From the sequence record NC_047880.1: a stretch of 64,000 bases of DNA; one strand, written 5' to 3'. Shown piece after piece: positions 2,552-32,538 of the stretch. The translations under genes and the position numbers were made by a program. How positions within the stretch are numbered: position 1 is the first letter of the stretch; every line of letters starts with the position of its first letter. The notes beneath the pieces are model-generated. The model was not told where the DNA came from. It saw only the letters and a list, made by a program, of their open reading frames with translations, and made no database searches.

Positions 2552-5369
2552 GAAGGGCCCCGCCTTCACACTACGTCCTAAACGAATAGCTGCATTCGAT
2601 GCGCTGCTTGGTGACGACGTTGGTGTGGAGGAATCCTCAGACTTAGACTTCCTGTCTGATAATAATTCAAGCGGTATTAACTTCCTTGAGAAGGGCGAGA
2701 CAAACATTGTTGACTTGGTTGAGAGTGCTCTTGAACAGCGCACACTCGTACCACGCGACTTGAAGTTCGATGATAGCTCAATGCCTCGCGCAAAGAACTT
2801 CCTCGAATGGTGTACTAGCCCTGACTTCTTGAAAGCTGAACCGTATCTTGAGCAGGCCATGATCGGCCTTCGTTTGTTCGGAGAGATCTGTGTACGATGT
2901 TCCCCGAACTTGCAATGGCAACATACAGAAAACCACGAGCCGCAGGAAGGCGTCGCTGCTATTGAGAGGAATCTTCATCTTCTCCATAACGGTGTCTGCC
3001 CTCACTGCGGCGCTCGGCGTTCTGACATGATAAAAAAGGGAGAGATGAACTTCTACAACGAGCTGGCCGTGAATGCCGGACAACGTTGTGTTAGTGCTGC
3101 AACTCCTGTAACAACGCATAACGGTATCATGCCTATCGGTCATATGATGATTGGCCATGACAGCCCAGGCTTCCACAAGCCGCGTAACAAGTATCGTGCT
3201 CACAACGGACGTGAGATAAAGAAAGTCAGTCAAGTCTACGTGTCTACTGAAAGCCCGACACGTATCATTACGCTGTCTAATGGTATGCACTTAGAAGCAA
3301 CACACGAACATCCTCTGCGTACTGAAACAGGCTTTAAGAAAGCGCTTGTGATCACAGAAGGTGAACGTGTAGAAGTTGCTCTCGGTATAAACTCATGGGG
3401 CAAGATCATAACGCCTGTATCTATCTATGATGCTGGCCAGTCTACCCGTGAAGATGCCTTGCGTTATCTGACTGACAGATCGCTTCCGTTTAACAGCGGT
3501 TATATGTACGTCACTGACGACGAGAACGTTGCTCAGATGGCGTGGTCGATTCTGATTAACGCAGGCTACCTGCCGCAGATTAATCGTGACGACACGAAGA
3601 ACGAGTACAGCATTCTGTTTGATCTCAATGCAGAGTGTTTGAGACGTTCTGTGCATCTGCCTGTGATATCGAATGCAGAAGGTGAAACGAAAGTAACGTA
3701 TGACTTGCAGATGGAGGGCATGCCGCAGTTCGTGGCATCAGGTCTTATTCATCATAACAGCGGTAAGTCCGTTGTTGTTGCAATGATCTCAACGTATCTA
3801 ACGCATCGCCTGCTTATGTCGCAATCACCGACAGGCATCTTGGGTATCAGTAGCACAACTGTTCTTCACGGAACGTTCGTTGCTCTTACTCAGAAGCAAG
3901 CGTCTGATACACTGTGGACTCCGTACTTCAACTACGTGATGGGTAGTCCGTGGTTCCAAGCATATCATGATCTGATTCGCAGACACGAACGCAAGTTCGG
4001 TATTGAAGTGATGAAGGTTCGTGATACGTTCATTCTTTATGGTCATCGTAGTTTCGTTATTTATCCAGCAGGACCTGATGGTCGTATTCTTCGTGGTCGT
4101 ACACGTATACTCAGCGTAATCGACGAAGTGGCGTATTTCGACAACGACGCCCAATCCAAGAAAATCAAAGTCAGTGCCAACGCTGTATACGGAGCACTCG
4201 ACCGCTCACTCGCTACTGTTCGATCAGCAGAGAAGCGGCAAGTCGAGGCCGGATATGACGAAGCCTTCACGGGTTACTTCTGCAACATCAGTAGCCCGGT
4301 ACACGCTCGTGACAAAATCAACGAGCTGTTGCGTATGGCTTTAGGTAGTAAGACTCTGTTAGGCATTCATGCACCGACGTGGAAGATGAACCCAACCATG
4401 CCGCGTGATAGTGAGTTCCTGATAGAAGCATTCCGTCGTGACCCTGTAGGTGCAGCGCGTGACTATGGTGCAGAAGCTCCGTTGTCTGCAAGTCCATTCA
4501 TCACTCAGCCTACATTCATCTCAGATGCAATACGTGAGAAGGGTCGTAACCTGTGTCAGTACACGCATCATATCATTCGTCACAAAGACGGTGAGAGACA
4601 GCGTTACGGTAGTCTCGTTAAAGCTGCTTCGACAACTCGCGCTTCTATTCTCGCAATCGACGCAGGTTATTCGAATAACAGTTTTGCTTTGGTGACAGGC
4701 TCACGCGGTGATGATGGTATTATCAGCGTAGACTGTCTGGTTGAGATTGTGCCTAAGCCAGGTATACCTCTCAACTACACAATGATATTTGACGAACTGC
4801 TTATTCCTCTTTGTAAGTTGCGTAACGTGCGCGTGATGCTTGCCGACCAATGGCAGTCACTCAAGTTGCTACAGGATGCTAAACTCAAAGTTGAATCCAT
4901 CGAAGAATCTGATCAATACAGCCTGAAATATCAGGACATGTGGACAGTGAAGACGATGTTCGAATCGCAGCCGTCTCGCATTAGTTTGCCGCGCATGGTG
5001 AATACTAAGAATATCAATGAGACGTTGCAGTATGATGGTGATGAATATCCTCAGTGCTTTGAGAACAAGCCTACTGAACACTTGATCATGCAGTTGCAGA
5101 CAGTGCAAGATACTGGACGCAGCGTTATCAAGAACACAGGTGCAACAGATGACTTGTGGCGTGCAATGGCTCTCATGGTATACGGGTTCGAATGCGGTGA
5201 GTACGAAGACTACCTGATTAAAGCAGCGGAGACTTCTATCAACCGTGACCCGAATCGTCTTGGTCGTGTAGCGCACAGACTCAACTCAGGCACAGCAAGC
5301 ACAACACGCTCTGCTCTTCCTGGTCGAGTGCTAGGTTCAGCCGCTACTCGTATGCTTGGACGTAAGTAG
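2538..5369 (+). CDS. terL: terminase large subunit containing an intein
   Basis: After splicing Walker A reads NAGQR|SGKS; Walker B VIDEVAYF; coupling motif ISSP; RNase-H-like nuclease LAIDAG and terminal DDLWRA; followed by portal. Confidence 0.85.
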   Translation: MAKPKKGPAFTLRPKRIAAFDALLGDDVGVEESSDLDFLSDNNSSGINFLEKGETNIVDLVESALEQRTLVPRDLKFDDSSMPRAKNFLEWCTSPDFLKAEPYLEQAMIGLRLFGEICVRCSPNLQWQHTENHEPQEGVAAIERNLHLLHNGVCPHCGARRSDMIKKGEMNFYNELAVNAGQRCVSAATPVTTHNGIMPIGHMMIGHDSPGFHKPRNKYRAHNGREIKKVSQVYVSTESPTRIITLSNGMHLEATHEHPLRTETGFKKALVITEGERVEVALGINSWGKIITPVSIYDAGQSTREDALRYLTDRSLPFNSGYMYVTDDENVAQMAWSILINAGYLPQINRDDTKNEYSILFDLNAECLRRSVHLPVISNAEGETKVTYDLQMEGMPQFVASGLIHHNSGKSVVVAMISTYLTHRLLMSQSPTGILGISSTTVLHGTFVALTQKQASDTLWTPYFNYVMGSPWFQAYHDLIRRHERKFGIEVMKVRDTFILYGHRSFVIYPAGPDGRILRGRTRILSVIDEVAYFDNDAQSKKIKVSANAVYGALDRSLATVRSAEKRQVEAGYDEAFTGYFCNISSPVHARDKINELLRMALGSKTLLGIHAPTWKMNPTMPRDSEFLIEAFRRDPVGAARDYGAEAPLSASPFITQPTFISDAIREKGRNLCQYTHHIIRHKDGERQRYGSLVKAASTTRASILAIDAGYSNNSFALVTGSRGDDGIISVDCLVEIVPKPGIPLNYTMIFDELLIPLCKLRNVRVMLADQWQSLKLLQDAKLKVESIEESDQYSLKYQDMWTVKTMFESQPSRISLPRMVNTKNINETLQYDGDEYPQCFENKPTEHLIMQLQTVQDTGRSVIKNTGATDDLWRAMALMVYGFECGEYEDYLIKAAETSINRDPNRLGRVAHRLNSGTASTTRSALPGRVLGSAATRMLGRK
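3087..3758 (+). mobile_element. 224-aa intein in terminase Walker A, endonuclease degenerate
   Basis: Begins CVSAATPV (block A), has ATHEHPL (block B), ends GLIHHN followed by Ser +1; no intact LAGLIDADG pair. Confidence 0.9.
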
Positions 5370-5377
5370 GTTAGCTT

Positions 5378-5385
5378 AGTAATTT
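5378..5385 (+). promoter_or_regulatory. AGTAATTT motif upstream of Zn-ribbon/portal genes
   Basis: Intergenic; the motif recurs before several operons. Confidence 0.45.
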
Positions 5386-5415
5386 GAATGAGTTAACCTC
5401 AAGAGGATTTAAATC

Positions 5416-5628
5416 ATGACCAGATTCTACAACCCATTGCTTGAAACAACTGTAAAGTCACAGTCTAGCGCAGACAAGGTTAAGAGTGAGAGTTCAGCAT
5501 TCAATGTTGATAACCCGAACTTCTGTCCTAAGTGCGCTTCTGCAACTGTACCGACCAAGTTACTTGACGGCGAAGATGTTATGTATTGCACATCATGCCG
5601 CGTGAGTCTTGCTATTCCTTTGAAGTGA
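5416..5628 (+). CDS. small zinc-ribbon protein
   Basis: CPKC...CTSC pairs; GAGGA RBS. Confidence 0.7.
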   Translation: MTRFYNPLLETTVKSQSSADKVKSESSAFNVDNPNFCPKCASATVPTKLLDGEDVMYCTSCRVSLAIPLK

Positions 5629-5635
5629 GGTCAAA

Positions 5636-7576
5636 ATGGGCATTCGAGTAGGACGCCAACAAAACGGCGAATCACAAGAATCAAACAAGAAGAAAGAACG
5701 GTCAGCGACTGGTTCTGCTTCACTACCTCGCGCAGTCGGAGAAGCTATACGAAGCCAAAGCTCGAAGTCTCAGATGCGTTTTGTGTCAGAGTCTTCGGGC
5801 GCGGGTGCTTCTGCTGGTAACATGCAAGTAGGTACTGTCCCTCTTGATATCGACTTAGAGCCGATGATGGAAGGGATGGACTACGAGGCTGATGACCGAC
5901 AGCTTTTCAACGTCTATCGAGATATTTACCACTTCGACCCGATCTGCGGATCGTATGTCGATTTGTTCTCAACGCTTCCGTTCTCTGACGTTAGTTTCAG
6001 TGGTGCGAAAGACAGCGTACTCGAACCGTATTACGAAGTGAACGAACGTCTGTCACTGACAACCAGTATGCCTAACATCACAACTGATATTCAGGTTACT
6101 GGTGCGTTCTGTGGTTCGATGCTGTACAACAAAGATCGTAAGAAGTTCATCGATCTAATGACGCACCGCTACGATAACATTGACGTTACTCCAATCCCGT
6201 TCTTGTCGCAGGACCCGATGTTCGAACTGCGCATTCCACAGTACGTTAAGCAAGCCTTCGCAAAAGACGGCAAGCGCATTGACGCACTAAAGAAAGAACT
6301 CGGTCAGTCATTCGTTGATAAACTTGTTAACGATGTGACGATGGAGCTTGACCCGATTGGTACTATCTACATCCCGCGTAAAACATTCAGCTTCGGCGAA
6401 GGTATCTCTGTCTTCCGTCGCGTTCTGCCTATCTGGCTGATCGAAAAGAACCTGTATCGCGGTACGTTGATTGAATCCGGTCGTCGTCAACGTGGTATTC
6501 TTCACGCTCAGTTAGGTGATGGTGATCAGTGGGAACCTTCTCAAGAAGAGATGGACTTCATGACAGACCTGTTGCTGTCTGCTGATAGTGACCCAATCGG
6601 CTCGATCATCACAACACGTCTCGGCGTGAACATTAGTGAGTTCCGTCAGGGTGGGGACTTCTGGAAGATTACTGATATCTGGGACCAGACTGCTACATTC
6701 AAGATGCGAGCAATGGGTATCAGTGAAGCATTCCTTAGTGGTGAAGCGAACTATGATTCCGGTGCTGCTGGCCTGACGATTTTCGTTGAAGCTATGCGAG
6801 CGTTCCGTGATCATCTGACGCGCAAGATCTACTACGAGAAAGTATTCCCTGTTATCAGCCTGATGAATGGCCTTGCTGTTCAGCGTAACGGTAAGATCAT
6901 CAAGAAGAACGGTATGATGGACGGCGGTCTAACTGAAATCATGTACAGACTGAATGACGGCAGCAAGCTGTTTATTCCGAACGTACACTGGTCTAAGCAA
7001 CTGCGTCCTGACGTTGATCAGGCGATGATGGAAAACCTTCGTGCTATGACTGAGCTGGGTGTTCCTGTTCCGCTTCGTGCTATCGCTGCTGCTGGTGGTT
7101 ATAACTTTGATCAGATTCTCATGGATCAAGATGAAGACCTCGCAATGCGCCGTAAGATTATGGCGTATAAGAAACGCATGGCAGAAATCGACAAAGAGTT
7201 TGCTCTGCCTGAAGGTGGCGCAGAAGGTGCTGATAGTTTCAGTTCTGTTAGCTCTCTGTCTAAAGATGCGAAGCGCGATCTCAAACGCCGTCAGCAACAC
7301 ATCGCTGGTGTGGGTCTGTCAAGTGCTGTACTTGGCGGTGAACGTCGTAAAGGCTTGAAGCGCGACTACGGTGAGCACTCTGAAATCTTCGAAGTCGGTA
7401 AGACAGGTAAGAAGAAACACGTCTTCCGCCAGAACGTTGCTAACTCCAAAGCTAACGATGCAATCTGGAAAGCTGCGAAGAACTACGAAGCCAACAAAAC
7501 AATGCCGCTGGATAATGGTAAGGTATCATTCGAACCAACTCAGCAAGAAATTAGGGCAATGTCGAGGGTCCGTTAA
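5636..7576 (+). CDS. portal protein (T4 gp20-like)
   Basis: 646 aa, follows terL; GRRQRGILHAQLGD resembles the gp20 RAPERRIFYIDVGN segment. Confidence 0.65.
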   Translation: MGIRVGRQQNGESQESNKKKERSATGSASLPRAVGEAIRSQSSKSQMRFVSESSGAGASAGNMQVGTVPLDIDLEPMMEGMDYEADDRQLFNVYRDIYHFDPICGSYVDLFSTLPFSDVSFSGAKDSVLEPYYEVNERLSLTTSMPNITTDIQVTGAFCGSMLYNKDRKKFIDLMTHRYDNIDVTPIPFLSQDPMFELRIPQYVKQAFAKDGKRIDALKKELGQSFVDKLVNDVTMELDPIGTIYIPRKTFSFGEGISVFRRVLPIWLIEKNLYRGTLIESGRRQRGILHAQLGDGDQWEPSQEEMDFMTDLLLSADSDPIGSIITTRLGVNISEFRQGGDFWKITDIWDQTATFKMRAMGISEAFLSGEANYDSGAAGLTIFVEAMRAFRDHLTRKIYYEKVFPVISLMNGLAVQRNGKIIKKNGMMDGGLTEIMYRLNDGSKLFIPNVHWSKQLRPDVDQAMMENLRAMTELGVPVPLRAIAAAGGYNFDQILMDQDEDLAMRRKIMAYKKRMAEIDKEFALPEGGAEGADSFSSVSSLSKDAKRDLKRRQQHIAGVGLSSAVLGGERRKGLKRDYGEHSEIFEVGKTGKKKHVFRQNVANSKANDAIWKAAKNYEANKTMPLDNGKVSFEPTQQEIRAMSRVR

Positions 7577-9982: not shown

Positions 9983-10498
9983 ATGACGGTTAACGATAAA
10001 CAACTACAGGAATGGTTGAGTGCGGCGCAAGTCGCATTCACTATGGGAAGTCGTCACACAGATAAAGGTCTTGCGCTTATCCTTGCTATCCACAAGGACG
10101 TGTCAACCAATAAGCCAGATCAGGTTGCTGATTTCCTTGATGACCTTGCTTCTGAAATGCGTATGTACGATTTGATTCGTCGTCGCTTCAAACCAGAGCT
10201 GTACACTGACTTTGCTGTCGGTGTTGATGTTCAGATCTATATTGCATACATGGCTCACTCGCCCGGCGAAGCTGTTATGGCTATGACGTATCTGCACCTG
10301 AATAAGTGCAAGAACATTAAAGACATGGTCAAACGTCTGCTGCCGAACGGCTACCCCGCTAATGACGCGATGGGCCTGTTGTGGAATCTCCAGAAAATTC
10401 AGAAAGAGCGCGGCTCACTCGACCCTGACAATATGGTAGACTACCCTAATACTGTAAATAGTCTGTACAACAGCATTCACAATTCGGGAGCGAAGTAA
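9983..10498 (+). CDS. hypothetical protein
   Basis: GAGG RBS, packed ORF. Confidence 0.6.
   Translation: MTVNDKQLQEWLSAAQVAFTMGSRHTDKGLALILAIHKDVSTNKPDQVADFLDDLASEMRMYDLIRRRFKPELYTDFAVGVDVQIYIAYMAHSPGEAVMAMTYLHLNKCKNIKDMVKRLLPNGYPANDAMGLLWNLQKIQKERGSLDPDNMVDYPNTVNSLYNSIHNSGAK
10451..10460 (+). promoter_or_regulatory. CTGTAAATA motif upstream of macro-domain gene
   Basis: ACTGTAAATA about 40 nt before ATG 10498. Confidence 0.4.
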
Positions 10499-12590: not shown

Positions 12591-12610
12591 AATCTGCGAA
12601 CGGTAATTTT
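12591..12610 (+). promoter_or_regulatory. composite AATCTG...GGTAATTT element upstream of cmoA-like gene
   Basis: AATCTGCGAACGGTAATTTT resembles AATCTGTAAATAGTAATTTG at 14297. Confidence 0.4.
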
Positions 12611-12640
12611 GTTCAGTCAAAACAAATAACGGAACATCAC

Positions 12641-13411
12641 ATGAGCAATGTAGATAAAACAATGCCTCAAGGTAAGTGGGAATTCAACGAGCCTGTTGCT
12701 GCTGTGTTTGATAACATGCTGGCCAACTCTATTCCTTCTTATGACCGTATGCGTGACCTGACGTTTCGTCTGGGTAAACGTTTCGTAACACCAGGCTCAG
12801 CTATTGTTGATCTCGGTGCATCACTCGGTCGTGCTATCGAACCATTCTGTGAACACTTCGGTCCGTACATGTATCATCATGCAGCAGACCGTCCTGAACC
12901 TGATTCTGAAACAGGCAATCTCTATTCGCTGTATGAGACTGCTCCTGCAATGCGTGAGCGTCTCGCACAGAACGCAGTGTTGAACGCAGCCGAAGCGAAA
13001 CTCGAATCAGAATCGCTTGTGGACGTTGATACGTTCCGTTTCAGTGAGCAAGTCGAATGCTCTTTGATTCTCAGCGTGTTAACTTTGCAGTTCACTCCGA
13101 TTGAACACCGTCAGCACATTCTGGAAAAGGTCTATGACTCTTTGCAGTCTGGTGGTGCATTCATTCTCGTTGAGAAAGTTCTCGGGGATGATAATTATCT
13201 GGACAAGCTGCTGGTAGATACCTACTACAGCATGAAAGGTGATAACGGTTATTCACAAGAAAGCATTGCGACTAAGCGCAAGTCACTCGAAGGTGTTCTC
13301 GTTCCAGTGAAAGCCGCGTGGAATGAAGAACTGCTCCGTAAAGCGGGCTTCAATCGCGTCGAATGTTTCTATCGCGATCTCAACTTTGCAGGTTGGATTG
13401 CTGTTAAATAA
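12641..13411 (+). CDS. cmoA: CmoA-like carboxy-S-adenosylmethionine synthase
   Basis: WEFNEPVAAVFDNMLANSIPSY matches CmoA N-terminus [42 protein letters not shown] with Arg213 (codon 13277) aligning to E. coli catalytic R199. Confidence 0.85.
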   Translation: MSNVDKTMPQGKWEFNEPVAAVFDNMLANSIPSYDRMRDLTFRLGKRFVTPGSAIVDLGASLGRAIEPFCEHFGPYMYHHAADRPEPDSETGNLYSLYETAPAMRERLAQNAVLNAAEAKLESESLVDVDTFRFSEQVECSLILSVLTLQFTPIEHRQHILEKVYDSLQSGGAFILVEKVLGDDNYLDKLLVDTYYSMKGDNGYSQESIATKRKSLEGVLVPVKAAWNEELLRKAGFNRVECFYRDLNFAGWIAVK

Positions 13412-13412
13412 A

Positions 13413-13422
13413 TCTGTAAACA
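13413..13422 (+). promoter_or_regulatory. CTGTAAA(C)A motif
   Basis: Intergenic, before the RBS of 13437. Confidence 0.45.
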
Positions 13423-13436
13423 GTAGAGGTTAGAGC

Positions 13437-14309
13437 ATGAGTTCTACAGCGGCCATACGCGAGAAAGTTCGCTCGGCATTATTTGCGAGTCATAACAAGC
13501 CTGTCGATATGCGACAAGCGTTGATGGACACTTTGAGTTGGATTCCGAAAGAAGACCAAGTTACTGTGTTCATGTCGGGTGGCATTGATAGTCATGCTTG
13601 CTTGTTTGCTTGCATCGACCTAGGCCTCAAAGTTAACGTGCTGTCGTTCACACTCGACTCACACGAAAGCTCTGACTTCAAGGCAGCGAGACACGCAGCC
13701 GAAGTTTTCGACCTTGACTTCACGCCGATTGTTCTTCCAACGAACGAAGCCCATCTGAAAAGCTGGGTACGTTTCGCAGTACACAAGCTCGGGCTCACGA
13801 ACAAAAGTGAGATCGAATGTTCTTGGCCGCTGTACACCGCAATCCGTCATCTTGAAGGAAAGACCAAACATATCGTACTCGGTCTTGGCGGCGACTCGTA
13901 CTTCTTAATGGCAAAGAGCGCTTCGATGCACTGCAAAGACTTAGTGTTAGAGCAACGTCGAAAAGCTACGCGCCGTGTGCTGTCTCAGAACGTTCTCGTT
14001 AAGCGTGAAGCTTTTGCTCGTGGTATCTACGCGCATCTTCCGTACTTCGAGTTCGGTCGCACTTACGCAGAGCTGCAAATGGAAACCGACTTTAAAAAGA
14101 TCAACAGTCCGCAGAAGTCGTTTTACAATCAGGCATTCCCTGAGTATCGCAAGCGCTGTAAAGTACGCGGCCACCAAAACTTCCAGCTGGGTGACACTAA
14201 CATTAGCGGCATCTTTAGCGACGTGTTGTTGAAGTCCGACTGGAACACAAGAAACTTGAAAGCAATCGTTGGCGTATACAATGACGTTGCATCAGGAATC
14301 TGTAAATAG
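13437..14309 (+). CDS. PP-loop ATP pyrophosphatase, asparagine-synthetase C-terminal-like; probable amide ligase (CmoY-like)
   Basis: FMSGGIDS PP-loop; LGLGGDSYF resembles GEGADELF; no glutaminase domain; adjacent to cmoA. Confidence 0.75.
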   Translation: MSSTAAIREKVRSALFASHNKPVDMRQALMDTLSWIPKEDQVTVFMSGGIDSHACLFACIDLGLKVNVLSFTLDSHESSDFKAARHAAEVFDLDFTPIVLPTNEAHLKSWVRFAVHKLGLTNKSEIECSWPLYTAIRHLEGKTKHIVLGLGGDSYFLMAKSASMHCKDLVLEQRRKATRRVLSQNVLVKREAFARGIYAHLPYFEFGRTYAELQMETDFKKINSPQKSFYNQAFPEYRKRCKVRGHQNFQLGDTNISGIFSDVLLKSDWNTRNLKAIVGVYNDVASGICK

Positions 14310-14316
14310 TAATTTG
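14297..14316 (+). promoter_or_regulatory. overlapping CTGTAAATA and AGTAATTT motifs upstream of the DPA peptide
   Basis: AATCTGTAAATAGTAATTTG, 60 nt before ATG 14376. Confidence 0.55.
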
Positions 14317-14375
14317 AGTAAGCACTGATAATCAGTCTGCTCTTAACATAAACCCAAATCCTTAAGGAGCGCATC

Positions 14376-14525
14376 ATGCGTCATATCGACCCAGCAGTAC
14401 GTTTTAACGATCCAGCCATCACTGACCCAGCAGCCCGTTTCGATCCGGCCGACCCTGCTGATCCAGCAATCGGTTTTGATCCGGCTGACCCAGCAGATCC
14501 TGCTGACCCGGCTGCTCGCTTCTAA
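14376..14525 (+). CDS. 49-aa Asp-Pro-Ala repeat peptide (below ORF-track cutoff)
   Basis: MRHIDPAVRFNDPAITDPAARFDPADPADPAIGFDPADPADPADPAARF; AAGGAG RBS 14364-14369; synonymous codon variation across repeats; terminator downstream. Confidence 0.85.
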   Translation: MRHIDPAVRFNDPAITDPAARFDPADPADPAIGFDPADPADPADPAARF

Positions 14526-14541
14526 TAGCGAAACTTAATAC

Positions 14542-14570
14542 AAGGGGGCTGCTCATTGCAGTCCCTTTTT
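14542..14570 (+). terminator. Rho-independent terminator
   Basis: AAGGGGGCTGC-TCATT-GCAGTCCCTTTTT. Confidence 0.8.
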
Positions 14571-14593
14571 ACTTTCCTGTTGAGGAACGTGCT

Positions 14594-15232
14594 ATGTCTT
14601 TTGAGCTTGTAAACATTCTGCCGATACTGTCGCAATCAACTACAGTTCATCGTGCAGCCGACGGCACTGATGTTCACATCGTCCGAAACTTCTTCACACA
14701 TACGGAATGCGAAGCACTAATCGCTGAGGGCATTCAGTATCTCGAACCGAGCCGTGTTGGTGGACCGAACGATACAACTAAGATCGATAAAACAGTTCGC
14801 TCGTCCTCTACTGCGATGTTAAGCGAAGTATCTCAACACCCTGCTGTACTCGAAGCTATTCGTCGCATTGATGACGCATACGGTTACCCACATCTGTTCA
14901 GCAACCCGCTGCAACTCAATCGCTATCAAGTCGGTGAAGAGTTCGTAGCGCATCACGACTGGCATGACCCTGTTCGCCAGCATGATCGTATTCAACGTGA
15001 AGGCCAACGCACTTGGACCTTCTTGATGTACCTCAACGATGACTTCGAAGGCGGTCAGACTGAATTCCCGTTGATGGATCTCACAGTAACTCCTGAGCGC
15101 GGTATGCTTGTTCTGTGGAACAACTTGCTTGTTGACGGTTCAGTCAATGAGACAACGCTACACGCATCGAAGCCTGTAACGTCAGGTACGAAGTTCATGA
15201 TGACCAAATGGTTTAAGAACAAAGTGCTGTGA
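14594..15232 (+). CDS. 2OG-Fe(II) oxygenase, prolyl-4-hydroxylase-like
   Basis: LQLNRY-x-x-G-x-x-F-x-x-HHD (HxD), TFLMYLND-x-x-EGGQTEFP, LHASKPVTSGTKF; Lys as the 2OG ligand, as in P4Hs. Confidence 0.9.
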   Translation: MSFELVNILPILSQSTTVHRAADGTDVHIVRNFFTHTECEALIAEGIQYLEPSRVGGPNDTTKIDKTVRSSSTAMLSEVSQHPAVLEAIRRIDDAYGYPHLFSNPLQLNRYQVGEEFVAHHDWHDPVRQHDRIQREGQRTWTFLMYLNDDFEGGQTEFPLMDLTVTPERGMLVLWNNLLVDGSVNETTLHASKPVTSGTKFMMTKWFKNKVL

Positions 15233-15239
15233 TAATCTT

Positions 15240-15257
15240 GGGTAGCTAAGGCTGCCC
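15240..15257 (+). terminator. GGGTAGC-loop-GCTGCCC hairpin
   Basis: Member of recurrent hairpin family; weak U tract. Confidence 0.5.
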
Positions 15258-15283
15258 ATTGTCGTATCTAAGGTTCAGGAAAG

Positions 15284-15293
15284 TCTGTAAATA
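15284..15293 (+). promoter_or_regulatory. TCTGTAAATA motif
   Basis: Intergenic, 30 nt before ATG 15324. Confidence 0.55.
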
Positions 15294-15323
15294 CAGAATA
15301 AGATTCCTCTGAGGATAACTCAA

Positions 15324-15932
15324 ATGATAGTTCGTATTATTGACGGAGATATTGGTGCGACGTATGTTGCCGAGCAACTGCAAGCTGCTGGCATTGAATG
15401 TACAGTGCATTCACCAAACAATCCCCGTGCTCGTGCGCGTTATGCGCCTTATCCTTCTATGTCTATTAGTCTTGACCAGCTTCTTATCGAGCGTCACATC
15501 GGTGATGTACTCGGTACGTATCGCGGTATCTTCCTGATTAGTAGCTATGCAGGTTCTTTGATTGCAAACAGCATGATTGATCTTTGTGGTCAGTCCAACA
15601 ATATCATTACGTGTGATAAACTCGACTGCGGTAATGTTCCTGTTGCAGCCACCAAGCTTTCTGTAAATATCTATCAGAAGCAGCGCAAGCTGGCTCGCAT
15701 CGCTCGTCGTGTTCCGCACTATGAGTCCGACCATGAGTTTATCATTGCGGATAATACGGTTCAGGCTCTCTCGTATCCAGAGCTAGTACAGAAAGAAGAT
15801 ATCGAACTTAACAACAAGCCGAAGTTTCTTTCTAGTCCTTCGCTGATCGTTGCTGCAAAGCGTCTGGGTATTAAAAGCAACACGTACCATAACTATGCCG
15901 GCCTTGTGAAAGAGTTTCTCGCCGCGCGGTAA
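15324..15932 (+). CDS. hypothetical protein with degenerate Rossmann-like N-terminus
   Basis: VRIIDGDIGATYVAEQLQAAGIECTVH resembles a beta-alpha-beta dinucleotide fold; GAGGA RBS. Confidence 0.6.
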   Translation: MIVRIIDGDIGATYVAEQLQAAGIECTVHSPNNPRARARYAPYPSMSISLDQLLIERHIGDVLGTYRGIFLISSYAGSLIANSMIDLCGQSNNIITCDKLDCGNVPVAATKLSVNIYQKQRKLARIARRVPHYESDHEFIIADNTVQALSYPELVQKEDIELNNKPKFLSSPSLIVAAKRLGIKSNTYHNYAGLVKEFLAAR

Positions 15933-30408: not shown

Positions 30409-32538
30409 ATGATCATCAAGCCGCCTACAATGAAAGAGATCAACGCGCAAGACAACAAGTGGCGTGGCATGAGCTTCTTCGCAGGCTGTGGTGGTTCTTC
30501 TACCGGTCTCAAATGGGCCGGTATTAACATCATCTTGAGTAATGAGTTCGTAGACGTGGCGCGTGAGTCTTATCAAGCGAACCACCCATCTACGTTAGTT
30601 CTCCCTCACGATATCCGTCGTCTCGACCCGAAGAAGATTATGCAGCACTTCGGGATGGGTAAGGGTGAACTTGATTTCCTCGATGGTAGCCCACCATGCT
30701 TCACTGAGAACACTCTGATTCACACTGCTGAGGGGATGAAGTTCATCTCTGATGTTAATGTCGGCGACATGGCAATGACTTCTGTTGGTCGTTATCATGA
30801 AGTGTACGATACTATGGTGCGTCCTTATGTTGGTACGATGCACAAGATCGAAACACTGCTCGGCTCGAACAACGCAACGCCTGAGCATCCGTTCTTCATT
30901 CGCCGCGTTCAACCTACTGGCTTGTGGTCTGAACCGTTCTGGTGTGATGCGAAAGATGTACAAGAAGGTGATTTACTCTCAACACCTCGAACAACTCCAG
31001 ACATGGGCGCTGACGCTTATCATGGTCAAATGTCATTGCTGACGCCTGTCATTCAGAGCTGGGTAACTTACCCTGAGTTCTGGTGGGCTATCGGTCATTG
31101 GTGTGCGCACGGTACACTTGAAGTTGTGCAGGGTGTCGATGTTGTTAGCTTCGAATCACACACAGCTCAGGAAAACGATCTGATTGAGCAGGTGTTTGAT
31201 GTTCTGAAAATCAGTAGCATCAACAGCGTAGACACAACCGTTGATCAGCGCAAGACCTATCGCGTTGTCATGGATTCAGAACTGTTCGCGTTCCTGAGCA
31301 AGTTCGTGGCACAGGGTAAGAACAACCTGTCTCGTCGTCTGCCGTCGATGATCTTCCACTTAGCTACTGAACTGAAACAGCAATTTATTCTCGGCTATCT
31401 CGGTCGTGACTACGTTAGTGCAATGGGCATGAGCCAGTTAATCAGCACAGACAACCGTCGCTTCCTCGCTGAGATGAATTACCTGACGTGCTCTGCATTC
31501 AACAGACCTCTGTTCGATGGTATGTTGTTCTCTGATGTGAACTACGGTTCAGCGCTTACGCCTCGTGATCGTAATCAGAAGAAAGAACATGTTGGTTATC
31601 TGCTGCTGCAAGATGAAAACAATTTCTTCTACGAGTTTAACGATAACGATCCACATCTGTGGGTTCAAGTGATCGAGAACCTCGCGTATCAGACAACCTG
31701 TGACGTGTACAACTTCTCAGTCAGTGAAGACGAGACGTATGTGGCGAACAGCATTGTCGTGCATAACTGCAAAGGCTTCTCGACGGCTGGCGTGAAAGAA
31801 GAAGGTTGGGGTAAAGAAGTCAAGTACAGCGAGAACAAGAAACAGCAGGTTGATGACCTGTTCGATCAGTATTGCCGTATGATCAGTGGCTTCCAGCCTA
31901 AAGTGTTCACAGCGGAAAACGTCAGTGGTCTTGTGAAGGGATCTTCTAAAGGTTACTTCCTTGAGATCATGAAAACGTTTGACGAGCTGGGCTACTATGT
32001 CAAAGCACCGTTGATTAACAGTGCATGGCTTGGTGTTCCACAGTCGCGTGAACGTATCATCTTCATGGGTGTGCGCAAAGACGTTGCACATGCGTTGGGT
32101 TATCGCTCAATCGGTACTGCTGTGCCTGCTGTCGTGCCTGCTTCTAGCATGGCTGTGCTTGCTGATGCTCTGCCTAACATTCTGCGATACAAATCGGCTG
32201 AGAAAGATATCATTAAGTATAAGCCCGCGATGAACGGACCTATGCCTACGATAACTGCTGCTGATGCGATTGCGTATGAGACGGCACGATTCTCTTCTGC
32301 TGGGTTTATCGAAGACAACAAGGGCATTCGTCGTAAGCTTACGATTGATGAACTGAAAGTTGTTTCCGGTCTACCTGCTGATTACAAGCTGGTCGGTAAG
32401 TTCGAACAACAGTGGGAACGTCTCGGTCGTATCTGCGTACCTCACATGACTCATGCTGCTGCGACTGCGTTGATCAATCATATTCTTGTGCCTTACGCCA
32501 AGAAGAAGAAACAGAAACCGGGCGCTCTCTTCCGTTAG
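30409..32538 (+). CDS. C5-cytosine DNA methyltransferase homologue with intein; probable carboxymethyltransferase (CmoX-like)
   Basis: FFAGCGG (I), GSPP|C (IV), AENVSG (VI), QSRERIIF (VIII), motif X reads LGRICVP in place of GN(A/S)VP. Confidence 0.85.
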   Translation: MIIKPPTMKEINAQDNKWRGMSFFAGCGGSSTGLKWAGINIILSNEFVDVARESYQANHPSTLVLPHDIRRLDPKKIMQHFGMGKGELDFLDGSPPCFTENTLIHTAEGMKFISDVNVGDMAMTSVGRYHEVYDTMVRPYVGTMHKIETLLGSNNATPEHPFFIRRVQPTGLWSEPFWCDAKDVQEGDLLSTPRTTPDMGADAYHGQMSLLTPVIQSWVTYPEFWWAIGHWCAHGTLEVVQGVDVVSFESHTAQENDLIEQVFDVLKISSINSVDTTVDQRKTYRVVMDSELFAFLSKFVAQGKNNLSRRLPSMIFHLATELKQQFILGYLGRDYVSAMGMSQLISTDNRRFLAEMNYLTCSAFNRPLFDGMLFSDVNYGSALTPRDRNQKKEHVGYLLLQDENNFFYEFNDNDPHLWVQVIENLAYQTTCDVYNFSVSEDETYVANSIVVHNCKGFSTAGVKEEGWGKEVKYSENKKQQVDDLFDQYCRMISGFQPKVFTAENVSGLVKGSSKGYFLEIMKTFDELGYYVKAPLINSAWLGVPQSRERIIFMGVRKDVAHALGYRSIGTAVPAVVPASSMAVLADALPNILRYKSAEKDIIKYKPAMNGPMPTITAADAIAYETARFSSAGFIEDNKGIRRKLTIDELKVVSGLPADYKLVGKFEQQWERLGRICVPHMTHAAATALINHILVPYAKKKKQKPGALFR
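30697..31767 (+). mobile_element. 357-aa intein inserted at the catalytic Pro-Cys; degenerate LAGLIDADG blocks
   Basis: Starts CFTENTLI; ATPEHPF block B; ends VYNFSV...IVVHN then Cys +1; WAIGHWCAHG and FILGYLGRD are decayed endonuclease motifs. Confidence 0.9.

Follow-up and report, generated by a model that had tools for sequence, protein, structure and literature searches.

A prolyl 4-hydroxylase-clade enzyme of Erwinia jumbo phage vB_EamM_Y3 and a co-inherited proline-rich repeat peptide, its inferred substrate, within a DNA-modification gene cluster

Prolyl 4-hydroxylases (P4Hs) of the Fe(II)/2-oxoglutarate (2OG) oxygenase superfamily have been characterized in several cellular and viral systems. 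The Bacillus anthracis enzyme (BaP4H; PDB 3itq, 5hv0 and 5v7y) is reported to act on collagen-like peptides and on EF-Tu, whereas Chlamydomonas reinhardtii P4H-1, solved with a (Ser-Pro)5 peptide (PDB 3gze), is a secretory-pathway enzyme that acts on short Pro-rich repeats in polyproline-II conformation and whose substrates are cell-wall glycoproteins. A viral member of this clade, vCPH of the chlorovirus PBCV-1 (PDB 5c5t), appears to hydroxylate short Pro-rich repeats such as (Pro-Ala-Pro-Lys)n. A separate line of work described a DNA hypermodification pathway in Synechococcus phage S-B43 (Yang et al. 2025, PMC12783734), in which CmoA makes Cx-SAM, CmoX (a C5 methylase homologue) makes 5-carboxymethylcytosine (5cxmC) in DNA, and CmoY (an AsnB-like ligase) amidates it with glycine, while the amine substrates of other CmoY clusters are unknown. 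Here, we report a phage locus in which a P4H-clade enzyme and a small Pro-repeat peptide are found together with genes of the latter pathway. None of the papers we searched describes such a module.

The analyzed window is the first 64 kb (64,000 nucleotides) of the genome of Erwinia jumbo phage vB_EamM_Y3 (hereafter Y3; NC_047880). The features relevant to this study are as follows.
12641-13411 (+): gp017, CmoA-like carboxy-SAM synthase (phrog_4752, E 4e-82; PMC12783734).
13437-14309 (+): gp018, glutaminase-less asparagine-synthetase-like PP-loop amide ligase (SGGIDS), a divergent CmoY homologue (27% identity, E 4e-14 to the S-B43 CmoY gene; PMC12783734), here called CmoY*.
14298-14308 (+): promoter-like phage motif ATCTGTAAATA, about 68 nt upstream of the peptide ATG.
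14376-14525 (+): gp019, 49-aa acidic repeat peptide with 10 Asp-Pro-Ala (DPA) units and net charge -6, the proposed P4H substrate.
14542-14568 (+): terminator-like GC hairpin plus T run between the peptide gene and the P4H gene.
14594-15232 (+): gp020, P4H-clade Fe(II)/2OG oxygenase of 212 aa, with catalytic residues H120, D122, H190 and K200.
15324-15932 (+): gp021, 202-aa protein of unknown function.
30409-32538 (+): gp050, C5 DNA-cytosine methyltransferase homologue next to a ParB-like gene, the presumed source of 5cxmC.

The gp020 ORF starts with ATG, has a GAGGAA sequence 7 nt upstream and is annotated only as '2OG-Fe(II) oxygenase'. It lies 68 nt after the peptide ORF, which has AAGGAG 7 nt before its own ATG. 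The hairpin in the spacer consists of 11 pairs followed by the T run (folding z-score -4.5). The motifs H120-H-D122, H190 (TLHAS), K200 (GTK) and EGGQTEFP (residues 152-159) were read directly from the translation, and all four catalytic residues are invariant in 19 relatives. Pfam gave only PF13640 (E 1.6e-15). A single-sequence phmmer search against PDB found BaP4H (E 1.4e-23), followed by human C-P4H alpha-2, Chlamydomonas P4H-1 and PBCV-1 vCPH, and a profile of 19 relatives gave E-values of 4e-49 for BaP4H, 9e-42 for Chlamydomonas P4H, 1e-40 for human C-P4H alpha-2 and 1.5e-31 for vCPH. The only other matches were P4H-TM and, at E 3e-4, prolyl 3-hydroxylase 1. The AF2 model is confident (pLDDT 93.4, pTM 0.91), and its best Foldseek match is 3gze_A, the algal P4H closed over the (Ser-Pro)5 peptide (TM 0.80, rmsd 2.6 A); the 39 best hits are all prolyl hydroxylases. 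Moreover, the residues that position the peptide in the algal enzyme, Arg161, Trp243, Tyr140 and Glu127 (PMC5684110), correspond in the profile alignment to R139, W206, F117 and N104 (Asp in several relatives), of which the first three are invariant in the phage family. No AlkB, TET or JBP match appeared in Pfam, in the PDB sequence searches or among the 50 best fold matches listed, and the PHROG names 'DNA endonuclease' are weaker hits to oxygenase families. Thus, the assignment of this protein to the P4H clade rather than to AlkB or TET/JBP, made in the preliminary description from sequence motifs, is confirmed by sequence, profile and predicted fold.

The preliminary description also proposed the adjacent DPA-repeat peptide as the substrate, which we examined by comparative genomics. 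P4H homologues (35-72% identity) and ligase homologues (55-91% identity) were located in public assemblies, in which individual loci are designated by L numbers. In all 12 natural lineages whose DNA was read (Y3, Yoloswag, L016, L018, L020, L023, L024, L144, L145, L146, L158 and L228; P4H 35-100% identical), the gene order is CmoY-like amide ligase, repeat peptide of 22-54 aa, terminator-like hairpin and P4H. The same order was found in L019, L021, L156 and L157, read with these lineages. The genomic contexts differ: the trio follows CmoA in Y3, Yoloswag, L016 and L021, follows a RecA-like gene in L018, L023 and L024, or lies inside operons with a CmoX-like gene, and CmoA in some, in L144-146, L156-158 and L228. 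CmoX-like genes abut CmoY* in L144, L145, L156 and L157 and share its operon in L146, L158 and L228; the L146 operon also has a chorismate mutase (3718-4161; prephenate supply for CmoA). The RecA-like gene of the Sen-NF-type lineage (L003, Salmonella phage Sen-NF, 1656-4124; L018 1339-3822) encodes 820-827 aa, far longer than RecA, and may hold an intein.

The small ORFs all have a Shine-Dalgarno sequence, and a strong hairpin of different sequence follows the small ORF in all 10 other lineages folded and is visible in L158. Interestingly, the repeat unit changes between lineages, with DPA and hydrophobic spacers in the Y3-like group and DPE, EPE, NPEI, APEI and NPE/NPER elsewhere, but every unit keeps one Pro flanked by Asp or Glu. 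Pro and acidic residues are exactly 1:1 in 10 of 12 peptides. The ten DPA units of Y3 use 8 different codon triplets, which argues that the amino-acid sequence, not a DNA repeat, is maintained. A partial scan of IMG/VR for a (DPA)3 DNA pattern was not a useful census: apart from two family members (L085 and L132), the matches were chance repeats, other frames or larger proteins.

In a maximum-likelihood tree of the ligases, the CmoY* clade is separated by a long branch from the CmoY of other 'hairy' jumbo phages (pEa_SNUABM_35, pEa_SNUABM_5, fHe-Yen9-02 and PaBG). Those phages have neither a P4H nor a peptide, and there CmoY is followed directly by a homologue of gp021 (58% identity between gp021 and pEa_SNUABM_35 gp018). 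This family of roughly 200-aa proteins without a Pfam match (L005 3792-4415; L006 3795-4445; L008 3825-4397 and 4413-5048), whose start overlaps the CmoY stop in P4H-less relatives, is a likely further component of the cytosine-hypermodification locus. Within the CmoY* clade, L147 (sister to L146, support 100/99) and the basal L229 lack both the P4H and the peptide, and no lineage has one without the other. P4H and peptide have therefore been gained or lost together at least twice, and the tightest link in the module is between these two genes. L147 (3977-4990) and Dickeya phage AD1 (gene 017; PMC6143709) have a DUF1611 protein in place of the P4H and peptide, and L229 has a 244-aa unknown protein after the ligase. 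No CmoY*-clade ligase was present in the prokaryote genome collection.

The one apparent exception was Salmonella phage Sen-NF (PV359490.1), in which the ligase abuts the P4H with no peptide, CmoA or CmoX, and an IS605-type transposase lies right after the P4H. However, this 108-kb 'complete genome' record looks like a concatenation of CDSs. All CDS features in the stretch read abut exactly, and blastn against the natural near-relative L024 showed that only CDS blocks are kept and that the 279-bp intergenic piece with the peptide ORF is missing. The record also lacks homologues of the first 54 kb of Y3 (terminase, portal). We regard it as a record artefact rather than a counter-example, and absences in this record should not be trusted.

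More distant P4H relatives were also analyzed. About 65 viral and metagenomic loci at 28-40% identity have no ligase, CmoA, CmoX or repeat peptide nearby. In the one locus read from this sister clade (33-40% identical), L161, the P4H sits next to a 959-aa repetitive tail-fibre gene that begins with a short collagen-like GPQGPPGTPG stretch (3267-4070 and 4440-7319), which may hint at the ancestral substrate. The peptide-linked enzymes are thus a specialised offshoot. Arg54 and Arg132 are conserved in 14 of the 15 module P4Hs, whereas in the sister clade Arg54 is nearly absent and Arg132 absent, so they are candidate partners for the acidic residue of the substrate.

With regard to expression, the motif A(A/T)CTGTAAAYA occurs 10 times in the window against 2.5 expected, 9 of them on the gene strand (positions 10450, 13412, 14298, 18579, 21965, 29658, 34952, 38680 and 43004), and lies just upstream of gene starts where positions were compared with gene coordinates. 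It is probably a phage promoter element. The same motif lies upstream of the peptide gene in Yoloswag, L018 and L158, and in Y3 no copy lies between the terminator and the P4H, which would be expressed by read-through. In one wastewater metatranscriptome, the only contigs on 12600-15300 are 14236-14386 and 14482-14632, the two flanks of the peptide gene. This fits a separately and strongly expressed peptide, but the evidence is weak, since it rests on two 151-nt contigs that could be DNA carry-over.

Taken together, we consider it more likely than not that gp020 is a peptidyl-prolyl 4-hydroxylase whose dedicated substrate is gp019, although no biochemical evidence exists and hydroxylation of the peptide is inferred. 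Using Fe(II), 2-oxoglutarate and O2, it would convert up to ten prolines of the (Asp-Pro-Ala)n peptide to 4-hydroxyproline (Hyp), and the promoter-like motif and leaky terminator suggest that the peptide would be made in excess over the enzyme. Prediction of the gp020-gp019 complex gave no verdict (score 0.02, partner pLDDT 33) and is not evidence either way, and co-occurrence cannot by itself separate action of the P4H on the peptide from action of both on a third partner. Nevertheless, relatives keeping the enzyme without a Pro-rich partner were not found among the 12 lineages inspected, at 35% identity or more; P4Hs at 40% identity or less do lack a partner, but they also lack the ligase context. 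The peptide and P4H seem to form an accessory pair that rides with CmoY* in the CmoA/CmoX pathway. The most likely purpose, inferred more weakly and only tentatively, is to supply a Hyp-containing amine donor (the N-terminus of the peptide, free Hyp, or an X-Hyp fragment released by peptidases) that CmoY* ligates onto 5cxmC, resulting in a lineage-specific DNA hypermodification. If so, this would be the first peptide- or hydroxyproline-bearing DNA base, and the variable repeat unit would diversify the adduct in an arms race with host defences, a possibility that remains doubtful at present. The only amine of the peptide is its N-terminus and no dedicated protease is seen, so the route from peptide to DNA adduct is speculative; the ligase also does not strictly need the pair, as shown by L147 and L229.

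Several other explanations were considered, all of which appear unlikely. Oxidation of the modified base, the alternative raised in the preliminary description, would mean that the P4H hydroxylates a moiety already placed on DNA by CmoY*, such as a prolyl amide on 5cxmC, which resembles an N-acyl-proline, with another role for the peptide. The constant adjacency of P4H and CmoY* in or next to CmoX/CmoA operons and the unknown amine substrate of this CmoY cluster are compatible with this view, and it is not excluded. However, it leaves the strict P4H-peptide co-occurrence and the invariant Pro of every repeat unit unexplained, the enzyme is acidic (19 K+R against 27 D+E, net charge -8) and keeps the peptide-positioning residues, and all its structural and sequence neighbours act on peptides or proteins, not nucleic acids. 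Somewhat less improbable, and still open, is a self-contained RiPP-like unit, in which the P4H hydroxylates Pro and the ligase adenylates the Asp/Glu side chains, amidating or cross-linking them to give a rigid acidic polyproline-II rod, for example a DNA mimic or anti-defence factor, that is not attached to DNA. Each repeat unit has one Pro and one carboxylate, a leaky terminator after the precursor gene is typical of RiPP operons, and asparagine synthetase probably adenylates an Asp side chain itself, while lasso-peptide cyclases seem to be AsnB homologues. On the other hand, CmoY* overlaps or abuts CmoX-like genes, its characterized homologue acts on DNA 5cxmC, ligases of this clade persist without the peptide, and both Asp and Glu would have to be accepted.

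The enzyme might instead hydroxylate the collagen-like (G-X-Y) fibre proteins of the phage, as proposed for chlorovirus and Bacillus P4Hs, its position next to the peptide being incidental. Y3 encodes three proteins with 24-34 G-X-Y triplets outside the window (66420-67238, 72922-73554 and 73555-74991, - strand), and the L161 P4H lies beside a collagen-like stretch. However, the P4H-less relatives pEa_SNUABM_35, pEa_SNUABM_5, fHe-Yen9-02 and PaBG keep homologues of these proteins (56-76% identity in three of them and weaker matches, E 1e-26, in PaBG), and therefore P4H presence tracks the peptide and CmoY*, not collagen genes. Pro in these repeats is also mostly at the X position, with only 2-3 per protein at the canonical Y position. 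Modification of a host protein such as EF-Tu or a ribosomal protein, as a host-takeover function, is the least likely possibility. Although BaP4H, which modifies EF-Tu (PDB 5v7y), and Pseudomonas PPHD bound to EF-Tu (PDB 4iw3) are among the fold neighbours, this does not explain the conserved gene order with the peptide or their joint loss, and the PPHD and PHD enzymes are more distant than the collagen/algal-type P4Hs.

Phage P4H-like genes are usually annotated as generic oxygenases with no known substrate, whereas here the genome itself points to a dedicated, co-inherited candidate, in a ligase clade whose amine substrate is unknown. Even if the product is not on DNA, a phage-encoded poly(Asp-Hyp-Ala) peptide would be a new kind of phage product. 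Compared with known systems, gp020 shares with BaP4H the single-domain architecture of about 210 aa, the HxD...H...K residues and the EGGxTxFP motif, but is only 25-29% identical to it in structural alignments, and BaP4H is a cellular enzyme without a co-encoded repeat peptide or ligase. Relative to the eukaryotic Chlamydomonas enzyme, Arg161 and Trp243 are conserved, while Tyr140 becomes Phe and Glu127 becomes Asn or Asp, both conservative changes. vCPH belongs to a giant virus of algae, has no known dedicated precursor-peptide gene next to it and has no link to DNA modification. Y3 has CmoA, a C5-methylase homologue and a CmoY homologue, but S-B43 CmoY uses free glycine and has no P4H or peptide partner, and the paper describing it mentions no oxygenase or peptide (PMC12783734). 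As in RiPP biosynthetic clusters, a small ribosomal peptide is encoded next to candidate tailoring enzymes, with a hairpin after the precursor gene, and the peptide-carboxymethyl-cytidine antibiotic of Bacillus amyloliquefaciens (cited in PMC12783734, ref. 24) is a precedent for a ribosomal peptide and carboxy-SAM chemistry in one pathway. In contrast to these, no leader peptide or recognition element is visible in the peptides, whose N-termini vary (MRH, MRN, MNK, MFK and MFN) and which consist entirely of repeats, there is no MccB-type enzyme, and the context is a lytic jumbo phage.
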